A stretch of 64,000 nt of DNA from Carpediemonas membranifera BICM. Taxonomy: Eukaryota > Protista > Fornicata. The position numbers and the translations under genes were made by a program. The stretch is taken from the NCBI GenBank assembly GCA_019828565.1, contig JAHDYR010000028.1, forward strand, positions 124,001-188,000. Direction: 5' to 3'. The notes under the pieces are model-generated. The model was not told where the DNA came from, made no database searches, and worked only from the letters and a program-made list of their open reading frames with translations. This document shows positions 6,443 through 55,633 of the stretch, one piece after another. The first letter of the stretch is position 1, and the number at the start of each line of letters is the position of its first letter.

Positions 6443-6625
6443 TGACAGGAGAACGGTGCAGTTTAACACAACAATTCTGATCCTGCGCGGCACACTACCT
6501 CCACTCACCCACTTCAGCCCTCGTCTGTACAACCGGGCTTTCGTGCTTTCAGTCGTCGGTCTGCACGAAAAGATGCGTCGTCTGTCGTCCATCGTCTGTT
6601 TCAGGCTCTCGCCGGAACCGGGTAA

Positions 6626-9665: not shown

Positions 9666-9708
9666 GAATGATTCTTCGCAGCTTAGGGTACGACACGCGC
9701 AGAAAAAG

Positions 9709-12700
9709 AAGCCCTGCCCCCGGTTCTCAGGGTCGAAGGCGTTCCCCACGATCGAGAGCACACTGATGACGGTGCTGCAGCGGTGCCAGGTGGCCGACGC
9801 GGACACCCGGGCGGGTTTGGGGGAGCGGCTCTCCATTGCAATGGACGCCGAGCTGTTGTAAACGCGCGTGGTCTGCAGTAGAATACTAGGTGCCGGCACA
9901 TCATCCCCATGTCAGACGGTAAGAAGCCAGCAGCTCGAGATGCTGCGTGCAGCACTCGGAGTTGCAGTGGGACAAGTCCTTGTGGACGTAGCAAAATGGG
10001 GCTGGCTGGGTCCGGGTTTCCTTGCTGAGCCAAGCCAGGTCGGGGCACCGTGATCTTTCATGTCGATCGCACGAAGCGCCGAGACGGACGGGACGACGGC
10101 AGCGGGAGGGCCTGCTGGTGATGACTGGGAGCAGGGCACGAGAGGCGTCGGACTAGGGACAACACTCTGACACTTCGTGGCGGACGACGTCGAGCCACTG
10201 CACCGCCGAAATCGAAGCCAAGACCTGGTTTAGGCCGCTACTGGTTCACCGCAGGGCGGCAGCGGGCGCCGTGCCTACGGCGTCCGGTCTCTAGGCGGGG
10301 GCTGCGCCTCGGTGAGAGGCAACACGCCTTCCGCAATCGTTGCTGGGGGATTACCGTCCACTTCAGGCTGGCGGCGATAGGAACCGGGCCGGACCTAATT
10401 AAACAACACGACTTCGAGAAGATTCTGACCTGACTTGATCTGACGACATTTGACGACTCCAAACTGTGATTTTGCCCCTATTTTGTAGCCGCATTTTAAG
10501 GTCTTCGGGTCTGTGCTATTGAAGGGTCCAACAATGGGTTTATACTGCGCAACACTGCCCTGTCTCACTCCTACTCACGTCTTAAGTCGGTAGGGAGATC
10601 GTATTCTCCAGGGCTTTCACAAAGCGTCTTCTTCGTGGACGTCAGCACAGCTGCAAACATCACAATCGCTCACACGTCGTCTCATTGTCTTCTATTCCAC
10701 ATTAAATTCACTTCTACACTTGTATATGCTGGTAATGGTGTTCATCGTCGGCTCTTATATGTCACCTTCATCAATGACCAGCTGCACACCTGTAGTGCGC
10801 AACAAGATGGAGATATATACGATCAAAGCCTCCATCAACCAAGCTTTCAGACAGAACTACACCGAAGAACGGAGAGTGGGGATTACGCCGCAGCAAAATA
10901 TCTCTACTCATGCCTGCTGGCCCGGCTCGCGGTTGAATGCTATGCGCAGCGCCGGCAACTCCCCCTACATGACGCCGACTTCCACAACGGACTGCTCACT
11001 CATGTACGCGGCGGTCATCCGGGTCAGGCCTACGCGGCCATCGTGCAGGCGCTCGACACTCTGCCGATGTGGCGGGGAGACTACCACGCGGGATCTGGTC
11101 GCGCAGCTCGAAGGTCGTGCGGAGTCGCATGGAGTGAGTCCCAGTCTCCGGAAGTGGTTCACCCGATACGCCAACTCTGTGAAGCTGTGGCTCGCCCGCA
11201 CGGTGACGACGTACCGTGACAGGCTACAGAGCACCCTCGCCCGACTCGAAGAGGCCCTCGCAGGTGTTGGTTCTCCGGCCTTCTTCCAGCAGGAGTTGGC
11301 CGGCGTTCACGCCATCCTCAACATGGTCAACCCTGAGATCCTCGCGTGTCTCCCCTCGCTGTTCTGGGCGACTCACATGGGTGAGAACGACGGGCTCCCA
11401 GTCTCTCAGGCTGCCCCACGCATTCTCTCTTGCGTCTGGGCAATTGCTGACGGAGTGGAGACGTTGAGTGGCCTCATCAGCCACTTCAACGGGGAGTACT
11501 CGATGTCGCTCCGCCAGCCTCGCCTCGTGCCGATCGTGCCCATGGCCCCCGTCCGACCGGGCTTCATGGCCTACGGTGAAACGATGGGCCTACTGAATGA
11601 TAATTTCTGCCATCGTGTGGGAATTAATCCCACACTCCCACACGCCACCCGCCGTCTGCTCAGCCTGAGCACCGATGGGGTCTGTGTGGCGGTGACGGTT
11701 AAGCGAGGCGGCCGCTATCGGCCACAACATGATGCGAGCATGCCTGTTCGAAAGCGAGCGAAATGGCGGGAGAAAGAGCGCCCCCGACTCGGGACCAATA
11801 ATGCCGAGGCTCCGCCCGCGCCGGATCCTGATGCCCACCTCATGGGGTTCGACCCGGGCGCGAGGTCCATCGGAGGGTATAGTATTACATCAGGCACCCC
11901 GATGGCACCACCAGCTCCGGCGTCCTTCCAAAGTGCGGATACACTAAGACGCCAAGTTTCGGCTTTGATATGACGGCCGCGTCGTTCAAGAGCACAAGAC
12001 TAGTGAGTATCAACAACTCTATTAGGTTTGTGCTGGACAACGCGAACGACATTTTCGAGGCTGGAATGCGTAAGTCTTTCCGCCGAGTGCGCTTTGCGAA
12101 CCACATCCTTCGCCAGAAGCACTTCGCCCGCTGCGGCCAACAGTTGGCTCGGGAGTTCGGTTGGCGTCGCCACCATCCCATCGCCACCCACATTCGCCTG
12201 AAAGTCTTCTACGGGAGCTCGGGATTCACCACGCCTGCTGGTATGTTCATTCCTTGCGCGCCATATCGAAAGTTCGCGAGAGAGATAGTTCCCCTTCTCA
12301 AGGGGTATAACATTGTCGTCGATCTTAACATGGTTAACGAGGACCGCACCACCGTCGTCTGCCCTCACTGCCACGCCCCCTGCAAGCGAGTTCGTCCGCG
12401 TGATGACCAGCACGTTCACCCACATCGTGTGATGCTCTGCGAAAAACCACAGTGCCGTGGTGCTCAGTGGCGCGCAACAGTTCCTGATGCTCTGAATGTT
12501 GATCATCGGGACAAGAGTGCTGCAGAAAACATCCTGTGGCGTTCTCTTGCCACGGAAGATGAGCTCAGTGGCTCTCCGTTCAGTCGCACATTGATCCCGC
12601 GCCTTCCAACATCATTCCAGTATCATCAATTGGCTAACCGCCAACATTCGTCTACGGACGGATGATGTTGTGCAGTTTGGCACTTTGATCGTTCCTTTCA

Positions 12701-12740
12701 GGCCCTGTCTGGAGGTTCGAACAATGTGTTTATACTGCGC
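9709..12740 (+). repeat. copy 1 of a near-identical inverted duplication (partner 18390-21415)
   Basis: Direct comparison shows near identity, with a +1 G (11074-11077), a net +5 nt indel (~11877) and a few substitutions. Confidence 0.97.
10807..12665 (+). pseudogene. Fanzor1-like RuvC nuclease, frameshifted copy
   Basis: Same protein as 18465-20317, but split just after RuvC-I (GFDPGARSIG) by a net 5-nt indel. Confidence 0.85.
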
Positions 12741-18240: not shown

Positions 18241-18385
18241 TCAGTTGCCGTACTCCGCAGCTTAGGGCTTTGCATAATTTTGTGTACCGCGTATCATTGT
18301 ACGCTGGCCCTAAGTGTGAGCATGCCTGCGTACGCAAACCTGAGGGGTAGCTGGGGGATCACAAATTTTCCACAGATTCTGACCC

Positions 18386-18464
18386 TGTTGCGCAGTATAA
18401 ACACATTGTTCGAACCTCCAGACAGGGCCTGAAAGGAACGATCAAAGTGCCAAACTGCACAACA
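18386..18464 (-). ncRNA. candidate Fanzor omega-RNA scaffold / element end
   Basis: Starts exactly after the nuclease stop. Its ends pair (TGTTGTGCAGT / ACTGCGCAACA, one G-U). Conservation between copies ends here. Confidence 0.45.
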
Positions 18465-21415
18465 TCATCCGTCCGTAGACGAATGTTGGCGGTTAGCCAA
18501 TTGATGATACTGGAATGATGTTGGAAGGCGCGGGATCAATGTGCGACTGAACGGAGAGCCACTGAGCTCATCTTCCGTGGCAAGAGAACGCCACAGGATG
18601 TTTTCTGCAGCACTCTTGTCCCGATGATCAACATTCAGAGCATCAGGAACTGTTGCGCGCCACTGAGCACCACGGCACTGTGGTTTTTCGCAGAGCATCA
18701 CACGATGTGGGTGAACGTGCTGGTCATCACGCGGACGAACTCGCTTGTAGGGGGCGTGGCAGTGAGGGCAGACGACGGTGGTGCGGTCCTCGTTAACCAT
18801 GTTAAGATCGACGACAATGTTATACCCCTTGAGAAGGGGAACTATCTCTCTCGCGAACTTTCGATATGGCGCGCAAGGAATGAACATACCAGCAGGCGTG
18901 GTGAATCCCGAGCTCCCGTAGAAGACTTTCAGGCGAATGTGGGTGGCGATGGGATGGTGGCGACGCCAACCGAACTCCCGAGCCAACTGTTGGCCGCAGC
19001 GGGCGAAGTGCTTCTGGCGAAGGATGTGGTTCGCAAAGCGCACTCGGCGGAAAGACTTACGCATTCCAGCCTCGAAAATGTCGTTCGCGTTGTCCAGCAC
19101 AAACCTAATAGAGTTGTTGATACTCACTAGTCTTGTGCTCTTGAACGACGCGGCCGTCATATCAAAGCCGAAACTTGGCGTCTTAGTGTATCCGCACTTT
19201 GGAAGGACGCCGGAGCTGGTGGTGCCATCGGGGTGCCTGATGTAATATCCTCCGATGGACCTCGCGCCCGGGTCGAACCCCATGAGGTGGGAATCAGGAT
19301 CCGGCGCGGGCGGAGCATCGGCATTATTGGTCCCGAGTCGGGGGCGCTCTTTCTCCCGCCATTTCGCTCGCTTTCGAACAGGCATGCTCGCATCATGTTG
19401 TGGCCGATAGCGGCCGCCTCGCTTAACCGTCACCGCCACACAGACCCCATCGGTGCTCAGGCTGAGCAGACGGCGGGTGGCGTGTGGGAGTGTGGGATTA
19501 ATTCCCACACGATGGCAGAAATTATCATTCAGTAGGCCCATCGTTTCACCGTAGGCCATGAAGCCCGGTCGGACGGGGGCCATGGGCACGATCGGCACGA
19601 GGCGAGGCTGGCGGAGCGACATCGAGTACTCCCCGTTGAAGTGGCTGATGAGGCCACTCAACGTCTCCACTCCGTCAGCAATTGCCCAGACGCAAGAGAG
19701 AATGCGTGGGGCAGCCTGAGAGACTGGGAGCCCGTCGTTCTCACCCATGTGAGTCGCCCAGAACAGCGAGGGGAGACACGCGAGGATCTCAGGGTTGACC
19801 ATGTTGAGGATGGCGTGAACGCCGGCCAACTCCTGCTGGAAGAAGGCCGGAGAACCAACACCTGCGAGGGCCTCTTCGAGTCGGGCGAGGGTGCTCTGTA
19901 GCCTGTCACGGTACGTCGTCACCGTGCGGGCGAGCCACAGCTTCACAGAGTTGGCGTATCGGGTGAACCACTTCCGGAGACTGGGACTCACTCCATGCGA
20001 CTCCGCACGACCTTCGAGCTGCGCGACCAGATCCCGCGTGGTAGTCTCCCGCCACATCGGCAGAGTGTCGAGCGCCTGCACGATGGCCGCGTAGGCCTGA
20101 CCCGGATGACCGCCGCGTACATGAGTGAGCAGTCCGTTGTGGAAGTCGGCGTCATGTAGGGGGAGTTGCCGGCGCTGCGCATAGCATTCAACCGCGAGCC
20201 GGGCCAGCAGGCATGAGTAGAGATATTTTGCTGCGGCGTAATCCCCACTCTCCGTTCTTCGGTGTAGTTCTGTCTGAAAGCTTGGTTGATGGAGGCTTTG
20301 ATCGTATATATCTCCATCTTGTTGCGCACTACAGGTGTGCAGCTGGTCATTGATGAAGATGACATATAAGAGCCGACGATGAACACCATTACCAGCATAT
20401 ACAAGTGTAGAAGTGAATTTAATGTGGAATAGAAGACAATGAGACGACGTGTGAGCGATTGTGATGTTTGCAGCTGTGCTGACGTCCACGAAGAAGACGC
20501 TTTGTGAAAGCCCTGGAGAATACGATCTCCCTACCGACTTAAGACGTGAGTAGGAGTGAGACAGGGCAGTGTTGCGCAGTATAAACCCATTGTTGGACCC
20601 TTCAATAGCACAGACCCGAAGACCTTAAAATGCGGCTACAAAATAGGGGCAAAATCACAGTTTGGAGTCGTCAAATGTCGTCAGATCAAGTCAGGTCAGA
20701 ATCTTCTCGAAGTCGTGTTGTTTAATTAGGTCCGGCCCGGTTCCTATCGCCGCCAGCCTGAAGTGGACGGTAATCCCCCAGCAACGATTGCGGAAGGCGT
20801 GTTGCCTCTCACCGAGGCGCAGCCCCCGCCTAGAGACCGGACGCCGTAGGCACGGCGCCCGCTGCCGCCCTGCGGTGAACCAGTAGCGGCCTAAACCAGG
20901 TCTTGGCTTCGATTTCGGCGGTGCAGTGGCTCGACGTCGTCCGCCACGAAGTGTCAGAGTGTTGTCCCTAGTCCGACGCCTCTCGTGCCCTGCTCCCAGT
21001 CATCACCAGCAGGCCCTCCCGCTGCCGTCGTCCCGTCCGTCTCGGCGCTTCGTGCGATCGACATGAAAGATCACGGTGCCCCGACCTGGCTTGGCTCAGC
21101 AAGGAAACCCGGACCCAGCCAGCCCCATTTTGCTACGTCCACAAGGACTTGTCCCACTGCAACTCCGAGTGCTGCACGCAGCATCTCGAGCTGCTGGCTT
21201 CTTACCGTCTGACATGGGGATGATGTGCCGGCACCTAGTATTCTACTGCAGACCACGCGCGTTTACAACAGCTCGGCGTCCATTGCAATGGAGAGCCGCT
21301 CCCCCAAACCCGCCCGGGTGTCCGCGTCGGCCACCTGGCACCGCTGCAGCACCGTCATCAGTGTGCTCTCGATCGTGGGGAACGCCTTCGACCCTGAGAA
21401 CCGGGGGCAGGGCTT
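18390..21415 (-). repeat. copy 2 of the inverted duplication (includes the TAF6 3' end)
   Basis: Reverse complement of 9709-12740. Confidence 0.97.
18465..20317 (-). CDS. Fanzor1-type RNA-guided endonuclease (TnpB/Cas12 superfamily); open frame 18465-20489, likely true ATG at 20317 joined across a G4 run
   Basis: STDGVCVAV; RuvC-I GFDPGARS; VFYGSSGF; VNEDRTT + CPHC...C-x4-C zinc finger; RuvC-III HRDKSAAENI. Confidence 0.88.
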
Positions 21416-22604: not shown

Positions 22605-23029
22605 AGCAATCGTGGTGCACTTTATGTCAAGTCGCTTTTCCGCCTCTGGAACCTGTTGTCCCTGCATATGTGACTGGTATTGACCCGGCTCCCCGGCGAC
22701 ACCGCGATCGAGTGGTATTTCCGGGGTTTTCCAGACACGGATCAGCGCGGTTATGACCGGTCTTGGGTCACCCTGTCATGGTGGAGTCGGTCACAGTCAG
22801 CACGACTTGGGGAGGGAGACGTGACACAATCGAGGTCAGAGAGCATCGCTAGAGTGTGGCAACAACAACACCAGAGCCCAAGACCCAGCTTCGGTCCCCG
22901 GCCCAGGTCACATCCGCCACCTGAAAGAACATGGGAAGAAGGGAAGAGAATCCATCCTGTCGGTGCTGTCACAGTTTGAAAAAATATCAAAAACAAAACT
23001 ATAAAGCTTTATACACAGCCGTAAATGCT

Positions 23030-30960: not shown

Positions 30961-33900
30961 TCACCCTTGCGCGACAATCCGCAGCAGGCTGGCTGCGACG
31001 TTGTCACCGTCGCCCTCATGAAGAGAGTCCAATTGCCTCAGGAGCTCCACCAGGGCCTCTGGGGCGGGCGTCCCTGCAGTAGCAGCAACCAGGGCCCGAC
31101 ACGTGGCCACTGACCACTGGATCATCGCCACCCGGTCGGCCGACGCCACGCCCTGGAGGGCGGCGGCCATTGCATGCATCAAGGTCTCGTCCAAGAAGGT
31201 GCCTGGATGTGCTGGGCCAAACAGACGAACCAGCAGGGCAATCGTGTGCAGGGCGTGGAGCTGCAGACTTGGGTTGGCCAGGCATGCCACGAGCGGGGTG
31301 AATGCATCCAAGATCTGGGTCTGCCCTGTCAAGATACACTGTGACCGCTGCCTGAGGCCGTTGTCACCAACACCATCGAGCACTGCAGAGAAGAATGCGA
31401 GGATCTCTTCCAGCACGGACACATTCCTCGCTTCGTTCGGGTCGGGGTCTGTTTCAGTAGCTTTAAGCACATCCACCATGAGGGCGGCCAATAGTCGGCA
31501 GATCTCCCTCGTCTGCAGCAGTTCTCTGCGGATATCCCGGTTTGCTAGGGCAATCCGGAGAATGAGCACGACGTCGCTGTGCAGGTGCGGGTGTGTCGCG
31601 TGGCAGAACCCAAGTAAATCTGTAAACACGAGTCGGCTGTGCTGGGCCAGCTCGTCGAGCACGCTCCCGTCCAGAGCGATGCATCGTGCAAGGAGGTGGG
31701 TGCCGATCTTAGGAATCGGGCTATGATCGTACAAGAGCGGCCTGAACACGGTGAGCATGTGTTCCTTGACGAACTTGACCACGACTGGCATGTTTCCCCC
31801 GTCCGCGATGACTGTATTAAGGGCCATCAGCAGGCACGACGCGTAGTGGTAGCGGGTGGCAGGGATGGGGTCTTGGCACAGGGAGAACACCAGCGCGGGC
31901 AGGAACTGGCCGACAGCGAGTGCCATGTCAAACGTGGTGACCTGGGCTGTCACCGCGACACACAGCGACTTCACCATGTCAAGGGCGTCGTCAGAGATGA
32001 TGGGCGTGTTGGTGTTCGGGAGAACTTGGATCGAGAGGGGCAGAACGACCGCGAGGACCTGGAGCATAGAGTCGCACGAGAGATGGGGGCGCAGGTCGGC
32101 GCGGTCGAACGCTGGAGAGAGAAGGCGCGCCTTTTCAATCTTTTGATTAATTGTCACCATTTTGTGGTCATTCCGGATCTCGGATAGGATCTTGCTGAAA
32201 GTCTGCTCCGCCAGCAGCTGGATCTGAGCCGCGAGGAACACGGCGCAGTGGCCGACATAAACTGCACTGTCGAACATGGCGATGCCGTAGATGGCGCATG
32301 CCCTCTTCGTGAGCAGAGGCTCTATCGACGTCGCAGGCATCCCTCTGATCATCTGTCCGCACGCCACCAAGGCCTTTCCTCTGAACAGGGCGTGCGAGTG
32401 CTCAGTGAGCTTGAGGACTGAGTCTGCGAGCACCTTGTCGCCCGCCAGGAGGTTAACTATGCGCTTGGGCGGGGATCCTGTGCTGAAGACGGCGTTGAGT
32501 ATGTTGAGGGCGGCCAGCTGGACCCTAGGGTTGTTCTCAGCGAGGAGCCCGCTGATGGGCAGCACATGCAGTTTCTCCGCAGCAGCATGGATCAGCGCCG
32601 GGTTATTCAAGCCGTGTCGCCCCACAGCGCTGAGGGCAGCAACCCTTCTGTTCGTCTCAGCGGTTGAGTCACCCGGGGTAGAGATAAATCTTCCCATGGC
32701 CACGATGACGGCTGGGGTGAAGAACGTGGCCGTAGCCGCGTGGGGGGTCCACACGGCGATGTTCTCGATGGCCCTGCAGATGTAGTGGGAAACCACGACG
32801 TCGAGGTCGTCGACTCGGTCGAGGAAGGTGGGGATCATAGAGGGCGGGATGCTCTGCCGGTCGGTGCGGCTACCAAGGTAGAACAGAACCTCGGCCAGGG
32901 CAGCGGTGGCCATCCTCCGCAGCCCCTGGAGGTTCTTAGTCGTCGCCGTCTGCAGCGCTTCGAGCAGTGCGAAACCGACCTCGCTGTGGGCCGAGCTCGA
33001 CGTCCGTGCTTCAGCTCTGAACAGCAGCGACAGGACGCAGCAGACCAGGGACCGGGTCGACGGGTCTCTATGCGCTCTCAGGAGCCGCGCCAGGTGGCTA
33101 GGCAGGGGCGAGGAGATCAGAGCAGACGCGACCTCCACAGACTTCAACAGATGCAGCACCAGGGCCAGCACGGGCTTGTGAGAGTCTGACAGGTCTCTGA
33201 TGTCCAGCATGGTGATCACACGACCCGTCCACGCTTCAAGGTCACCGGCGCTCATGCGGGCGAGCTCGGCTGCCGTGGGAGCGTCAGCAGCAAGGTGGTC
33301 ATACGATATCTTCGCGTATCTGTCAATCTGCTTTGTCAACACAATGGGTCGCGCCTTGAGGTCCTCCGCGACCCTGAGCAGTGGCTCGGCGTCAGGGGGG
33401 GCCTGAAAGTCGTCCTCGGGGATGGCAGACATGAACATGCGCGTCTCTGTCTCCGTCGTCGGTGTCTCGGGCGGAAGTATGCCGGAGCCTGACTTGCGGT
33501 TTGAAAGAATCGCGGCAATCTTGGACAGACGGTGCTGTACCGCGTGTGAATCAGATTCATCAAATTTCTGAGCGATCCCCCTGTATCTCTGATACATTGG
33601 CTCAGGTGGCAATGCCCCCAACTTCAGTGGTTCCCCAAAGAAGGGATGGATTGCCAGGGCGGGCCAAGCGAGCCGCTCTCTCGGGTCACGGGACAATAGA
33701 CCAGTCAGCAGACTCTTGAAGTCGGCGTCAGTTCCTGCTGGGATGTCTAGGGGGCAAGTGAGTGTGTTTCTAGCGGCTTGAAGCGGGGTGTCGGATACCG
33801 TGATGAAGGGGTGACGGCCGAACGCCATGTAGTAGAGCAGGATACCCATAGCCCACAGGTCGGTCTCGTATGACGGCACGCCTTCCCTGTCAAGAAGCTC

Positions 33901-53892: not shown

Positions 53893-55572
53893 TTAATCAC
53901 TCTCATCATCTTTTTGTCTACTTGTGGATGACGGAGCGCCTTCCTGTATTTGCGCTTTTCTTTTGATACCCTCTGGGAGACTGACAAGTTCCGCATGGTC
54001 GTCCTGGAGCAGAATAAAGTGGGTAATGCCATGTCTGGAACAGAACACCTGGAAATTCTCACAACGATCAGCAGCTGAGTCGCCAGAAGGGTACAAACCC
54101 CAAAACTGGTGACCATGTGTGAACAATATCACTGTAGAATTATTACCGTTGTTGCACACCATGATGACATTACGCATGTAGATCATGGAAAACTCTCGCA
54201 CAGCATCATCGGTAAGCCAGCCCATCTTGGAAAACAGTTCTGCCTTAGCGGAATCCTCCGTCAGAGCCGTCCGCTTCACCCGGCTTTCCACCAGCTCGGC
54301 ACGCAAAGCCATGGCTGCCTCAAGATCTGTTCTGTGGGTCAGGGTGGTCATATCCCGGAAATGGCCGTCCCTAATCATGCAACAGCAGTGCGCAACACAG
54401 CTGCCATCACGGTGTGTCGAGTATTTCCTCCATGACTTCAACCCATTCACAATTTCCTCAACGAAGGACTGTGGCTGACCGCTGGTGCCGATTGGAATCT
54501 CTTTCTTCTCAATCATATTGTTGATGTGAGACTCAATGGCCACAGATGACTCGTGTTCAGACTTGATCAAGAGCAGAGAGCGAAAGTCGACGATCTTAGC
54601 AGTGGAATCGAAGTTCGGGTACGCAGGCCGGTAAACCTTGTTAAGCAAAGGATAACAACGCGGCGGGAGTCTTGCGTCTTCCTCCGATACGATCTTCGCT
54701 TTTGCACAACCGTCAGGTCTTGCGATAATGACTCTTCGCTTCATGTACGAGAGCTTGGACATCCAGAACCAGAATTGCGCGATCTCATGGAGGTGATCTG
54801 GCTGAGTCATGATTCTGATGAGCCACGTGGCGTCATGGGCGGCAAGTTCGACGGCGGGTAGCTCATCTGGTGTCAAAAGCACCACACACCGTTGCATTGT
54901 GAACTTGAACTTGCCAGAATACAACTGAAAGATCGGCCGTGGGTCACGGGCGGAAGACTGGCAGGCGGCAATATACACACCCATGATTCGGGCGAACTTG
55001 CAGACATGACTCTCATAATTCTTCAGAATTGCCTCGATGAAGTCGAAGGCAGTTGTCCAGATGGCTGGTATCGTGCGGGCATCGACCACAAACCGACCAT
55101 CAGAGTCCGAGTGACCAGTGATAATGAAAAAAGTCTCATAGTCACCATACAGCTTGCCGAATTCCTTGATTTTCGCCTCAAAATCGTCCTCGTTCTCGAA
55201 CTGGGCCGTCTCGATAACCGTATACTCGCTATGCATTGCCGCAAAGATCTGACGAATGCGTTCTGCGTGCCCTCCAATGGAGACAGATTCATCAATCGAA
55301 AACTGCCTGCTATCTCCAGCAACGAACCCATAGGTTGGCTCGAACACGATGAGGACACGTGTATTCTTCAGCGCCAGTGCAGTACGGGTGCACTTGTGAC
55401 GTCGGGATGGCGAGGGAAAACCGACGTTGCGTGTTTCGCTACTGATGTCCCCACAGACACATTCAAACAGCTTTGATCCATCCAGATATCGATTTCTCCA
55501 CCCCATTGCATTGAAAAATGTCTGATCGTCGTTCATGACGCCAATGCCAAATTGAGGGTGAGAAAATGGCAT
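53893..55572 (-). CDS. caspase/CHAT-fold protease-like domain fused to an OTU-like domain
   Basis: IITGHSD ... YIAACQS dyad; DGSC ... GWL...FSMIYMRNVIMV ... LLQDDHAELV. Confidence 0.6.
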   Translation of the reverse strand: MPFSHPQFGIGVMNDDQTFFNAMGWRNRYLDGSKLFECVCGDISSETRNVGFPSPSRRHKCTRTALALKNTRVLIVFEPTYGFVAGDSRQFSIDESVSIGGHAERIRQIFAAMHSEYTVIETAQFENEDDFEAKIKEFGKLYGDYETFFIITGHSDSDGRFVVDARTIPAIWTTAFDFIEAILKNYESHVCKFARIMGVYIAACQSSARDPRPIFQLYSGKFKFTMQRCVVLLTPDELPAVELAAHDATWLIRIMTQPDHLHEIAQFWFWMSKLSYMKRRVIIARPDGCAKAKIVSEEDARLPPRCYPLLNKVYRPAYPNFDSTAKIVDFRSLLLIKSEHESSVAIESHINNMIEKKEIPIGTSGQPQSFVEEIVNGLKSWRKYSTHRDGSCVAHCCCMIRDGHFRDMTTLTHRTDLEAAMALRAELVESRVKRTALTEDSAKAELFSKMGWLTDDAVREFSMIYMRNVIMVCNNGNNSTVILFTHGHQFWGLYPSGDSAADRCENFQVFCSRHGITHFILLQDDHAELVSLPEGIKRKAQIQEGAPSSTSRQKDDESD

Positions 55573-55633
55573 CGCACTTTAAAGCAGCTTTATGTGAGAA
55601 ATGTATTGCATATAATTCTGCATTCAGAAGACG

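Follow-up and report, generated by a model that had tools for sequence, protein, structure and literature searches.

A Fanzor1-type gene with putatively chromovirus-derived ends, inserted near a promoter-like motif in Carpediemonas membranifera

Introduction

How does a Fanzor gene move when the ends of the element that carries it look like those of a retroelement? The question is raised by a mobile element of 2227 bp at positions 18386-20612 of the window, a stretch of 64,000 nucleotides from Carpediemonas membranifera BICM (contig JAHDYR010000028.1, positions 124,001 to 188,000 of the forward strand), whose minus strand carries a Fanzor1-type open reading frame (ORF). An earlier reading of this DNA (the original prediction) took the locus for a non-autonomous long terminal repeat (LTR) element that had captured the nuclease. 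Fanzor and TnpB nucleases presumably earn their keep by restoring DNA transposons that have been excised, and a review of 2026 reports no evidence for a retrotransposon encoding Fanzor (PMC13565253); we found no literature linking Fanzor and Carpediemonas. Here we suggest, with a rough probability of 0.55, that this is a non-autonomous element of the integrase type on a chromovirus-derived chassis, and that it is copied in its entirety as one unit, most probably at the DNA level. The LTR ancestry proposed in the original prediction is upheld by the LTR end of a chromovirus in the same genome (chromovirus X), and replication through the LTR cycle is disfavoured by variants that are specific to one end.

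Results

Sharp ends and five-base-pair duplications

The element starts with TGTTGCGC and ends with AGCACA, with TGT...ACA as its termini. A search of the genome with window positions 18300-20750 gave 75 scored matches among 290 candidates, and nearly all of these begin at query base 86/87 (window 18386) and end at 2313/2314 (window 20612). More than 25 copies begin exactly at 18386, and the same left boundary recurs in independent read contigs, which exit the element exactly at 18386 and 20613 into a variety of flanks. The read runs consist of contigs without known strand or depth, and served only to place boundaries, deletion joints and adaptor-tagged ends. The original prediction had seen no target-site duplication (TSD), and we located one directly at the two boundaries:

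18381-18385, no strand: left TSD copy, GACCC, matching 20613-20617
20613-20617, no strand: right TSD copy, GACCC, matching 18381-18385

Among the 26 fetched copies, about 18-20 have a perfect 5-bp TSD whose sequence differs from copy to copy (chance 1/1024 each), and in several further copies the TSD agrees at 4/5 positions. Solo units of 43 nt, each with a TSD of its own, are present in the genome as well. Of the features that the original prediction proposed to look for, sharp TGT/ACA boundaries, TSDs of 4-6 bp and solo units were thereby found, and the copies end at the TGT...ACA units, not at boundaries unrelated to them. TGT...ACA ends combined with a 5-bp stagger are the signature of a retroviral-type DDE integrase.

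A 17-mer from the start of the terminal unit occurs 281 times in the genome (once for the reversed control) and a 12-mer from the right end 151 times (once for its control), with about 114 of the 151 sites not belonging to chromovirus X. The family amounts to about 100 or more non-autonomous copies, mostly internally deleted. Some deletion derivatives share identical breakpoints and have different TSDs, and therefore the derivatives themselves transpose. At two loci (L044 and L045) there are repeat insertions into exactly the same 5-bp site.

Two terminal units that differ and are inherited separately

The right end of the element consists of a purine-rich run and a short unit, part of which is repeated at the left end:

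18386-18420, plus strand: left terminal unit, whose nt 1-25 equal the right unit in most copies
20552-20569, plus strand: polypurine-tract-like run, 15/18 purines, ending GGGCAG, directly before the right unit and nearly invariant in copies
20570-20612, plus strand: right unit, a 43-nt mini-LTR, whose last 30 nt equal the chromovirus X LTR end in most copies

The direct repeat of 35 nt (18386-18420 and 20570-20604), which the original prediction had described as 31/35 identical, is indeed so and is conserved in all examined copies. The repeat had been placed in units of 79 and 71 bp, and these sizes have to be revised. The right unit is 43 nt long and ends at 20612, with 20613-20640 being target DNA, while the left 79 bp (18386-18464), regarded earlier as an LTR-like repeat, are a fold-back in which the last ~37 nt are an inverted copy of the first ~37 nt, and are not a repeat of LTR length. 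The palindrome that had been assigned to the primer-site position is found ~45 nt deeper in the element, where the ORF ends, and does not adjoin the left unit. Next to the left unit, we found neither a feature resembling a primer-binding site (PBS) nor a palindrome, unlike in the resident chromoviruses. Apart from TGT/ACA, the element has no inverted terminal repeat. A 'post-LTR' sequence that we had guessed from loose read ends was rejected, being absent from the genome.

In every copy examined, the left and right units are the same for 25 nt and then diverge, the left unit running CGAACCTCC... and the right unit TGACCCTTCAATAGCACA. Unit variants that recur in several copies keep to one end: G12 is found in the right unit only (4 copies), A11 in the left unit only (2 copies) and TTTTT in the left unit only (8 copies). 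A genome-wide pattern search for a right-type unit followed by left internal sequence gave 0 cases, and for the tract followed by a left-type unit it gave one exact case, which is explicable by chance flanks. LTR reverse transcription regenerates U3-R-U5 (the unique 3', repeated and unique 5' regions) at both ends, and a fresh copy has identical LTRs. The LTRs identical at insertion that characterise an LTR retrotransposon were not found here, as the units are asymmetric and symmetric copies are absent. Because the units differ, the variants are end-specific and symmetric versions are missing, a canonical LTR reverse-transcription cycle is not supported. We infer that the two ends are inherited independently and never homogenised, and that the family has therefore been propagated as a whole unit, from its first to its last base.

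Shared end and purine tract with resident chromoviruses

The LTRs of the resident chromoviruses are very short (57-134 bp), as the original prediction had noted with a range of 48-105 bp, 100% identical within each element and bounded by TG...CA and TSDs of 4-5 bp, and each is directly preceded by a G-rich tract ending in CAG or AAG. The tract of the Fanzor element, which had been recognised before as sitting directly in front of the second unit, resembles these chromovirus tracts in its letters (a G-run plus CAG/AAG, then TG). The chromovirus tract that the original prediction had noted near 1316-1326 of the window is on the minus strand at ~1310-1326, and ends in chromovirus style as described.

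Exact copies of the right-end 12-mer include many same-strand pairs ~4553 bp apart, which belong to chromovirus X. Its 3' end (L040:7344-7460, minus strand) consists of a tract and an LTR of ~91 nt, and the ORF upstream of this LTR has an integrase zinc-binding domain, an integrase core and a chromodomain. In most copies, the Fanzor right unit ends with the same 30 nt as the X LTR, a stretch covering the box, R and U5; the window copy has two mismatches there. The 5' part of the X LTR is unrelated to the Fanzor unit, starting with TGATGC against TGTTGC, and its U3 is ~45 nt longer. A gypsy element thus has the last 30 nt of the unit, with another U3, and the lack of any gypsy element using this LTR, which would have refuted the original prediction, does not apply. 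Of 37 LTR copies of X, 35 have no mismatch over a 27-nt probe and ~17 full-length pairs exist, and therefore X is young and active; it has the look of a Ty3/gypsy family that is active at present and whose integrase bears a chromodomain. Together, the sequence comparisons support a derivation of the Fanzor element termini from a Ty3/gypsy chromovirus LTR. The terminal 15 nt also end a different Fanzor family (L016).

Several side observations concern these elements. Chromovirus X was read at L040:7344-9901 (minus strand), and one X copy is on the contig of the window, 16-20 kb upstream of it. A second Fanzor family (P0007-like; L015:4300-4400 and L018:3300-3390) ends after its stop codon in ...CACTYTATGATACTTCAYCA; with this TG...CA-type terminus and its AT-rich promoter-like box, the end architecture seems to be common to Fanzor families. 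Directly after each resident chromovirus 5' LTR there is a perfect palindrome of 8-10 nt (e.g. ATATCGATAT, ATGTCGACAT, GTAATTAC, GTTATAAC; at L033, L036, L037, L038, L039, L040 and window ~470-480), in the position normal for a tRNA primer-binding site, which suggests an unusual priming or dimerisation mechanism in the chromoviruses.

Insertion at a fixed distance from a promoter-like motif

The flank beyond the right end is conserved at positions +12 to +23 in 22 sites, where the 5-bp TSD and 8 variable nt are followed by T-T-A-A-A/C-C-T-G-C-R-C. In the whole genome, 57 exact right ends are followed by WAMCTGC at a distance of 11-15 nt, in 47 cases with the same spacing, against 0 in the control. 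The window copy conforms to this arrangement:

20622-20637, plus strand: host target motif in the target DNA, 12.3 bits, at the canonical spacing (TSD + 8 nt + TTAAA-TGC)

The insertion is oriented, with the right end 13 nt upstream of the host motif (consensus CC-T-TAAAC-TGC-R-C) and the Fanzor gene pointing away from the host gene. With a matrix derived from the insertion sites, we located the motif upstream of 6/10 large minus-strand genes of the window, at 0-135 nt from the likely start codon (18253-18268, 6454-6469, 55570-55585, 33833-33848, 9674-9689 and 22613-22628, all on the minus strand). At 10/24 insertion sites, an ATG-initiated ORF of at least 220 aa begins ~35-75 nt past the right end, compared with a baseline of 7% for an equal 60-nt window. 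From the motif upstream of start codons and the ORFs past the right ends, we conclude that the target is a host core-promoter or initiator motif, and CC-TTAAAC-TGC-R-C is probably the Carpediemonas core promoter or initiator itself. The 5' untranslated regions (UTRs) of Carpediemonas appear to be very short.

Chromovirus X lacks the promoter-target preference of the Fanzor elements: only 1/~17 of its right ends and 1-3/~17 of its left ends are near the motif, and the one case at the exact distance is a site already occupied by a Fanzor element. Among seven other resident elements, none (0/7) is at the promoter motif.

The Fanzor ORF

The ORF and two predicted RNA structures at its 3' side are placed as follows:

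18465-20489, minus strand: Fanzor1-type ORF of 674 codons from GTG, true start uncertain, from alignment and profile searches
18386-18464, minus strand: terminal fold-back of 79 nt, from the Fanzor stop codon to the element end, predicted fold
18467-18490, minus strand: small hairpin at the end of the ORF, with an 8-bp stem and a 4-nt loop, its 8 pairs invariant in 23 copies

The encoded protein has the motifs GFDPGAR (RuvC-I), NEDRT (RuvC-II), a CxxC...C..C zinc finger and HRDKSAAENI (RuvC-III). In an alignment of 13 sequences these appear as GFDPGAR, NE(D/F)RT followed by CPxC...C..C, and HRDKSAAENI, the RuvC triad D, E, D is present, and the motifs align with GIDPG, DEFRTS and NRDVNAAxNI of relatives that bear PF07282. 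Direct Pfam and PDB sequence searches with the ORF gave nothing significant, PF07282 being reached at E 0.028 in 5/13 members. A profile search of 1.84 billion proteins brought up six relatives from other species, at E 4e-5 to 6e-4; the Cas12f1-like TNB domain (PF07282) passes the Pfam cut-off in five of these and falls below it in the sixth. By hhalign, our family matches these outside relatives with 99.4% probability (E 4.6e-22) and with the three catalytic motifs in register, and the profile of the relatives matches the solved Fanzor1 structures of Spizellomyces, Parasitella and Guillardia (8GKH at 4e-28, 9CF0, 9CER), so that the link from the ORF to the TNB domain and to the solved structures is a transitive one. 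Because of the motifs, the hhalign link and the matches of the relatives to solved Fanzor1, the ORF is, as far as sequence and profiles tell, a Fanzor1-type nuclease, in agreement with the original prediction. An AlphaFold2 model from the 13-sequence alignment reached pLDDT 34 and was not used for a fold search.

The close protein relatives of the ORF are all from Carpediemonas membranifera, and the genome has several paralogous Fanzor families at 35-50% identity, one of which alone accounts for 91 matches. One paralogue family, P0010 (22 member sequences, at least 91 genomic matches), is publicly named 'cytosine deaminase', which looks like a mis-annotation. The window copy and L003 lack 54-55 nt at 19474/19475 (54 nt, or 18 codons, in the window copy); the segment lies inside a conserved coding stretch and is present in L004-L006 and in most read contigs. 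We considered whether the gap marks an intron and rejected this, as there are no GT...AG ends and the residues are kept in paralogous families; it is a deletion. The other four full-length copies carry frameshifts and most copies encode a broken Fanzor, and with the deletion in the window copy these frameshifts imply that the family is decaying. The element has no second ORF, the longest members (~2.3 kb) encoding Fanzor alone.

The predicted fold of 18386-18570 has a minimum free energy of -63.8 kcal/mol (z -4.25). RNAalifold found no covariation in 23 copies, which are too alike for compensatory changes, and Rfam has no match for the predicted 3' structure. We regard the 79-nt fold-back as the putative final stem of an omega-RNA scaffold whose guide would lie below 18386, and a co-option of the LTR as guide-RNA scaffold is thus a prediction from the modelled fold.

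Promoter-like units and cDNA ends

Read on the minus strand with the host promoter matrix, the right unit scores 16.1 bits and the left unit 15.0 bits. The promoter-like motif of the right unit faces the Fanzor gene, and that of the left unit, 4 nt from the terminus, faces outward. At several loci, a long host ORF starts just beyond the left end, at 6-20 nt, the distance usually seen between motif and ATG. The left unit includes an AT-rich initiator-like box that can be read on both strands. Bidirectional promoters are known in Giardia.

The read runs carry GACCTTGGCTGTCACTCA, the adaptor of Vertis 454 cDNA libraries (PMC4176332), and therefore are probably cDNA. Among the contigs tagged with the adaptor, plus-strand starts are seen at 18403/18406 (unit position 18-21) and at 20219. 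The first of these starts agree with an RNA antisense to Fanzor, which the original prediction had anticipated, and the plus-strand starts fit a bidirectional AT-rich initiator.

Duplications and fragments

Within the window there is a further copy of the element:

10374-12740, minus strand: second copy (L002), inverted and 100% identical, in a ~3-kb segmental duplication, without the element's first 4 nt

As this copy is part of a segmental duplication that includes the right flank, it does not represent an independent transposition. The inverted duplication (window 9709-12740 against 18390-21415, 100% identical) comprises the element and ~0.8 kb of right flank and brackets two host genes, and one of its breakpoints is 4 nt inside the left end of the element, which hints at a rearrangement linked to transposition or to the nuclease.

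Two other arrangements were considered as parts of larger elements and rejected. Right-end fragments 3.8 kb apart at L043, which could have been the LTRs of a larger element, belong to a tandem segmental duplication of host genes, and a second 17-mer 4.7 kb from a copy at L042 is not a partner of that copy, being an isolated remnant of 22 nt. The latter (L042:6559-6580) is made up of the last 5 nt of the purine tract and the first 17 nt of the unit, is intergenic, lies ~110 nt upstream of a host gene and may be a remnant or an excision scar. At L046:399-475 and L047:326-453, a complete right unit is inserted head-to-head, in inverted orientation, inside another unit, 8 nt after nt 23; the units, which bear the promoter-like motif, seem to attract further insertions.

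Discussion

We propose that the element moves as DNA, by cut-and-paste or by copy-and-paste with gap repair, and that the repair would give rise to the internally deleted derivatives. An integrase-like protein, either the chromoviral integrase or a transposase derived from one, would be supplied in trans. The repeated unit may act as a bidirectional AT-rich initiator, with the right copy driving Fanzor and the left copy firing an antisense RNA inward and possibly replacing the promoter of the host gene just outside. The structured 3' UTR with the terminal fold-back could serve as the omega-RNA scaffold, with which Fanzor would re-cut emptied donor sites, a role that by the argument of the review is sensible only for elements that excise (PMC13565253).

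Several observations weigh against this proposal. No transposase is present inside any family member and none was identified elsewhere in a search that was not exhaustive, and neither an excision footprint nor an empty site was observed. No retroviral-type integrase is known to excise chromosomal DNA. Four features are as an RNA-mediated LTR cycle predicts: the well-formed purine tract stands exactly before the right unit, the left terminus begins with the base that follows the tract, a plus-strand RNA has its 5' end at unit position 18, and the two units cease to agree 8 nt into the presumed R. One copy (L004), the single such case, has a rare G-to-C change in both units. Every amplified derivative retains at least ~900 nt of the left side, which is more reminiscent of a need for packaging than of the miniature derivatives of DNA transposons. 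The tract, the start of the plus-strand RNA and the ~1 kb kept on the left side argue in favour of some step that involves RNA.

The same observations are what a non-autonomous LTR retrotransposon would account for, in which a plus-strand RNA from the left unit is packaged, copied and integrated by the reverse transcriptase and integrase of a chromovirus. The coincidence of the left terminus with the start of the unit, the cDNA contig ends at 18403/18406, the variant common to both ends of L004 and the left side kept in all amplified derivatives fit this explanation, as do the solo units with TSDs and the R-U5 shared with the active chromovirus X. In a possible non-canonical version, the minus-strand strong-stop DNA of the helper jumps onto the Fanzor RNA and a second jump uses the 8-nt homology in R. 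This would rebuild the observed asymmetry, the X-like right tail and the limit of identity at 25 nt, and the Fanzor cassette could thus be retro-mobilised by hijacking the strong-stop DNA of a helper chromovirus. However, U3 variants in multiple copies stay at one end, although either version takes both U3 from one template; the units are asymmetric in every copy, symmetric elements are absent genome-wide, and the left unit has no adjoining PBS or palindrome of the kind found in all resident chromoviruses. The candidate helper X starts its U3 differently and chooses other targets (1/~17 right and 1-3/~17 left ends near the motif), the seven other resident elements are 0/7 at the promoter motif, and a nuclease that restores donor sites is of no gain to a retroelement, as argued in PMC13565253. 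Taken together, we think that this route is unlikely, if still to be taken seriously. We hold it to be distinctly improbable that the element is an ordinary DDE DNA transposon (Ginger2/TDD, for instance), whose dedicated transposase is encoded at another place in the genome and whose LTR look is either convergent or the trace of a single old capture without present function. Such a transposon would have the TG...CA ends, the 5-bp TSD, the many internal-deletion derivatives and the independent inheritance of the two ends, and Fanzor1 is known from DNA transposons (PMC3627910). On the other hand, there are no terminal inverted repeats past TGT/ACA, no such transposase was seen in a search that was not exhaustive, and an identity of 30 nt with an active chromovirus, together with the well-placed tract, is hard to explain by convergence.

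The fixed distance and orientation of the insertions also raise the question of what selects the site. If the Fanzor ribonucleoprotein (RNP) itself chose or cut it, as a eukaryotic analogue of the CRISPR-associated Tn7-like transposons, one would understand why the promoter-like target resembles the element's own unit (GCGCAGTATAAAC vs GYGCAGKTTAAGG), why the two sides of the 5-nt stagger are 18 and 23 nt away from the outer motif edge, in a Cas12-like geometry, and why the preference is specific to Fanzor elements and not seen in chromovirus X; TGT...ACA ends with a 5-bp TSD are a Tn7 signature, too. The conserved stretch, however, is just ~12 nt, its consensus follows the host promoter wherever host promoter and unit differ, position 22 of the would-be seed is mismatched in 9/25 sites, Fanzor is broken in most copies, and the unit as a guide at the 3' end of the RNA is a supposition. 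We therefore regard this explanation as the least credible of those considered here. The broader suggestion that the Fanzor RNP, or an RNA derived from the unit, steers integrase-type insertion to core promoters, the stagger reflecting Cas12-like geometry, is in our opinion very unlikely. We return to a whole-unit, integrase-type mobilisation on a chromovirus-derived chassis as the preferred explanation.

On this explanation, Fanzor sits on the ends, the tract and the insertion chemistry of a still-active gypsy element, and yet the copies behave as whole DNA units. This raises the questions of whether an enzyme with an integrase fold can mobilise chromosomal DNA that has LTR ends, and of what the RNA-guided nuclease adds. 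If the strong-stop hijack were true instead, the element would provide the first case of an RNA-guided nuclease carried by a retroelement. The fixed insertion 13 bp upstream of a core-promoter motif, with a copy of that motif facing outward, makes a compact example of safe-site targeting, and the target motif is a first handle on the promoter architecture of Carpediemonas.

Comparison with known systems

Fanzor1 is known from Mariner, Helitron, IS4, Sola2, MuDr and other DNA-transposon contexts (Bao & Jurka 2013, PMC3627910). Like these transposons, the Carpediemonas element has Fanzor1 as a passenger, exists in many non-autonomous copies without a transposase and carries the gene near one of its ends, where the omega-RNA is expected; unlike them, it has LTR-derived ends (TG...CA, a purine tract and a chromovirus unit) and a TSD of 5 bp. 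TnpB elements of the IS200/IS605 or IS607 type lack a TSD, use a TnpA (HUH or serine recombinase) and have subterminal hairpins at both ends; the Carpediemonas element differs from them in that 5-bp TSDs are present and a second ORF is absent. With terminal-repeat retrotransposons in miniature (TRIM) and large retrotransposon derivatives (LARD) it shares the short length without pol, direct terminal repeats, TG...CA, the 5-bp TSD, the purine tract, solo repeats and an autonomous relative with part of the LTR sequence in common. Its repeats, in contrast, are non-identical, the variants are not common to both ends, there is no recognisable PBS, just the 3' 30 nt of the helper LTR are held in common, and the cargo is a full protein gene in antisense.

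Ty3, Tf1 and the Dictyostelium elements DGLT-A and TRE integrate close to sites where transcription initiates, at a constant distance. The Fanzor element does likewise, implying tethering to promoter-bound factors, whereas its target is an AT-rich initiator of the RNA polymerase II type in a metamonad, its orientation is fixed and the sampled resident chromoviruses lack the preference. Tn7-like transposons have TGT...ACA ends and a 5-bp TSD and insert in one orientation at a set distance, and those of type V-K carry a protein descended from TnpB. The Fanzor element resembles Tn7 and its CRISPR-associated relatives in the ends, the TSD, the oriented insertion at a set distance and the TnpB-related protein (as in V-K), and differs from them in having no TnsABC-like genes and a eukaryotic host; a role of Fanzor in targeting is a supposition. 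Ginger2/TDD transposons have sizeable terminal inverted repeats and encode their own transposase. Short TSDs, TG...CA ends and, on our proposal, integrase-fold chemistry on DNA are common to them and to the Fanzor element, which has neither sizeable inverted repeats nor an encoded transposase. As its LTRs are not regenerated and both inverted repeats and a transposase are missing from it, it fits neither the definition of an LTR retrotransposon nor that of a Ginger/TDD element, and is best described as a Fanzor cargo whose chassis is chromovirus-derived and of the integrase type, with positional targeting like that of Ty3.

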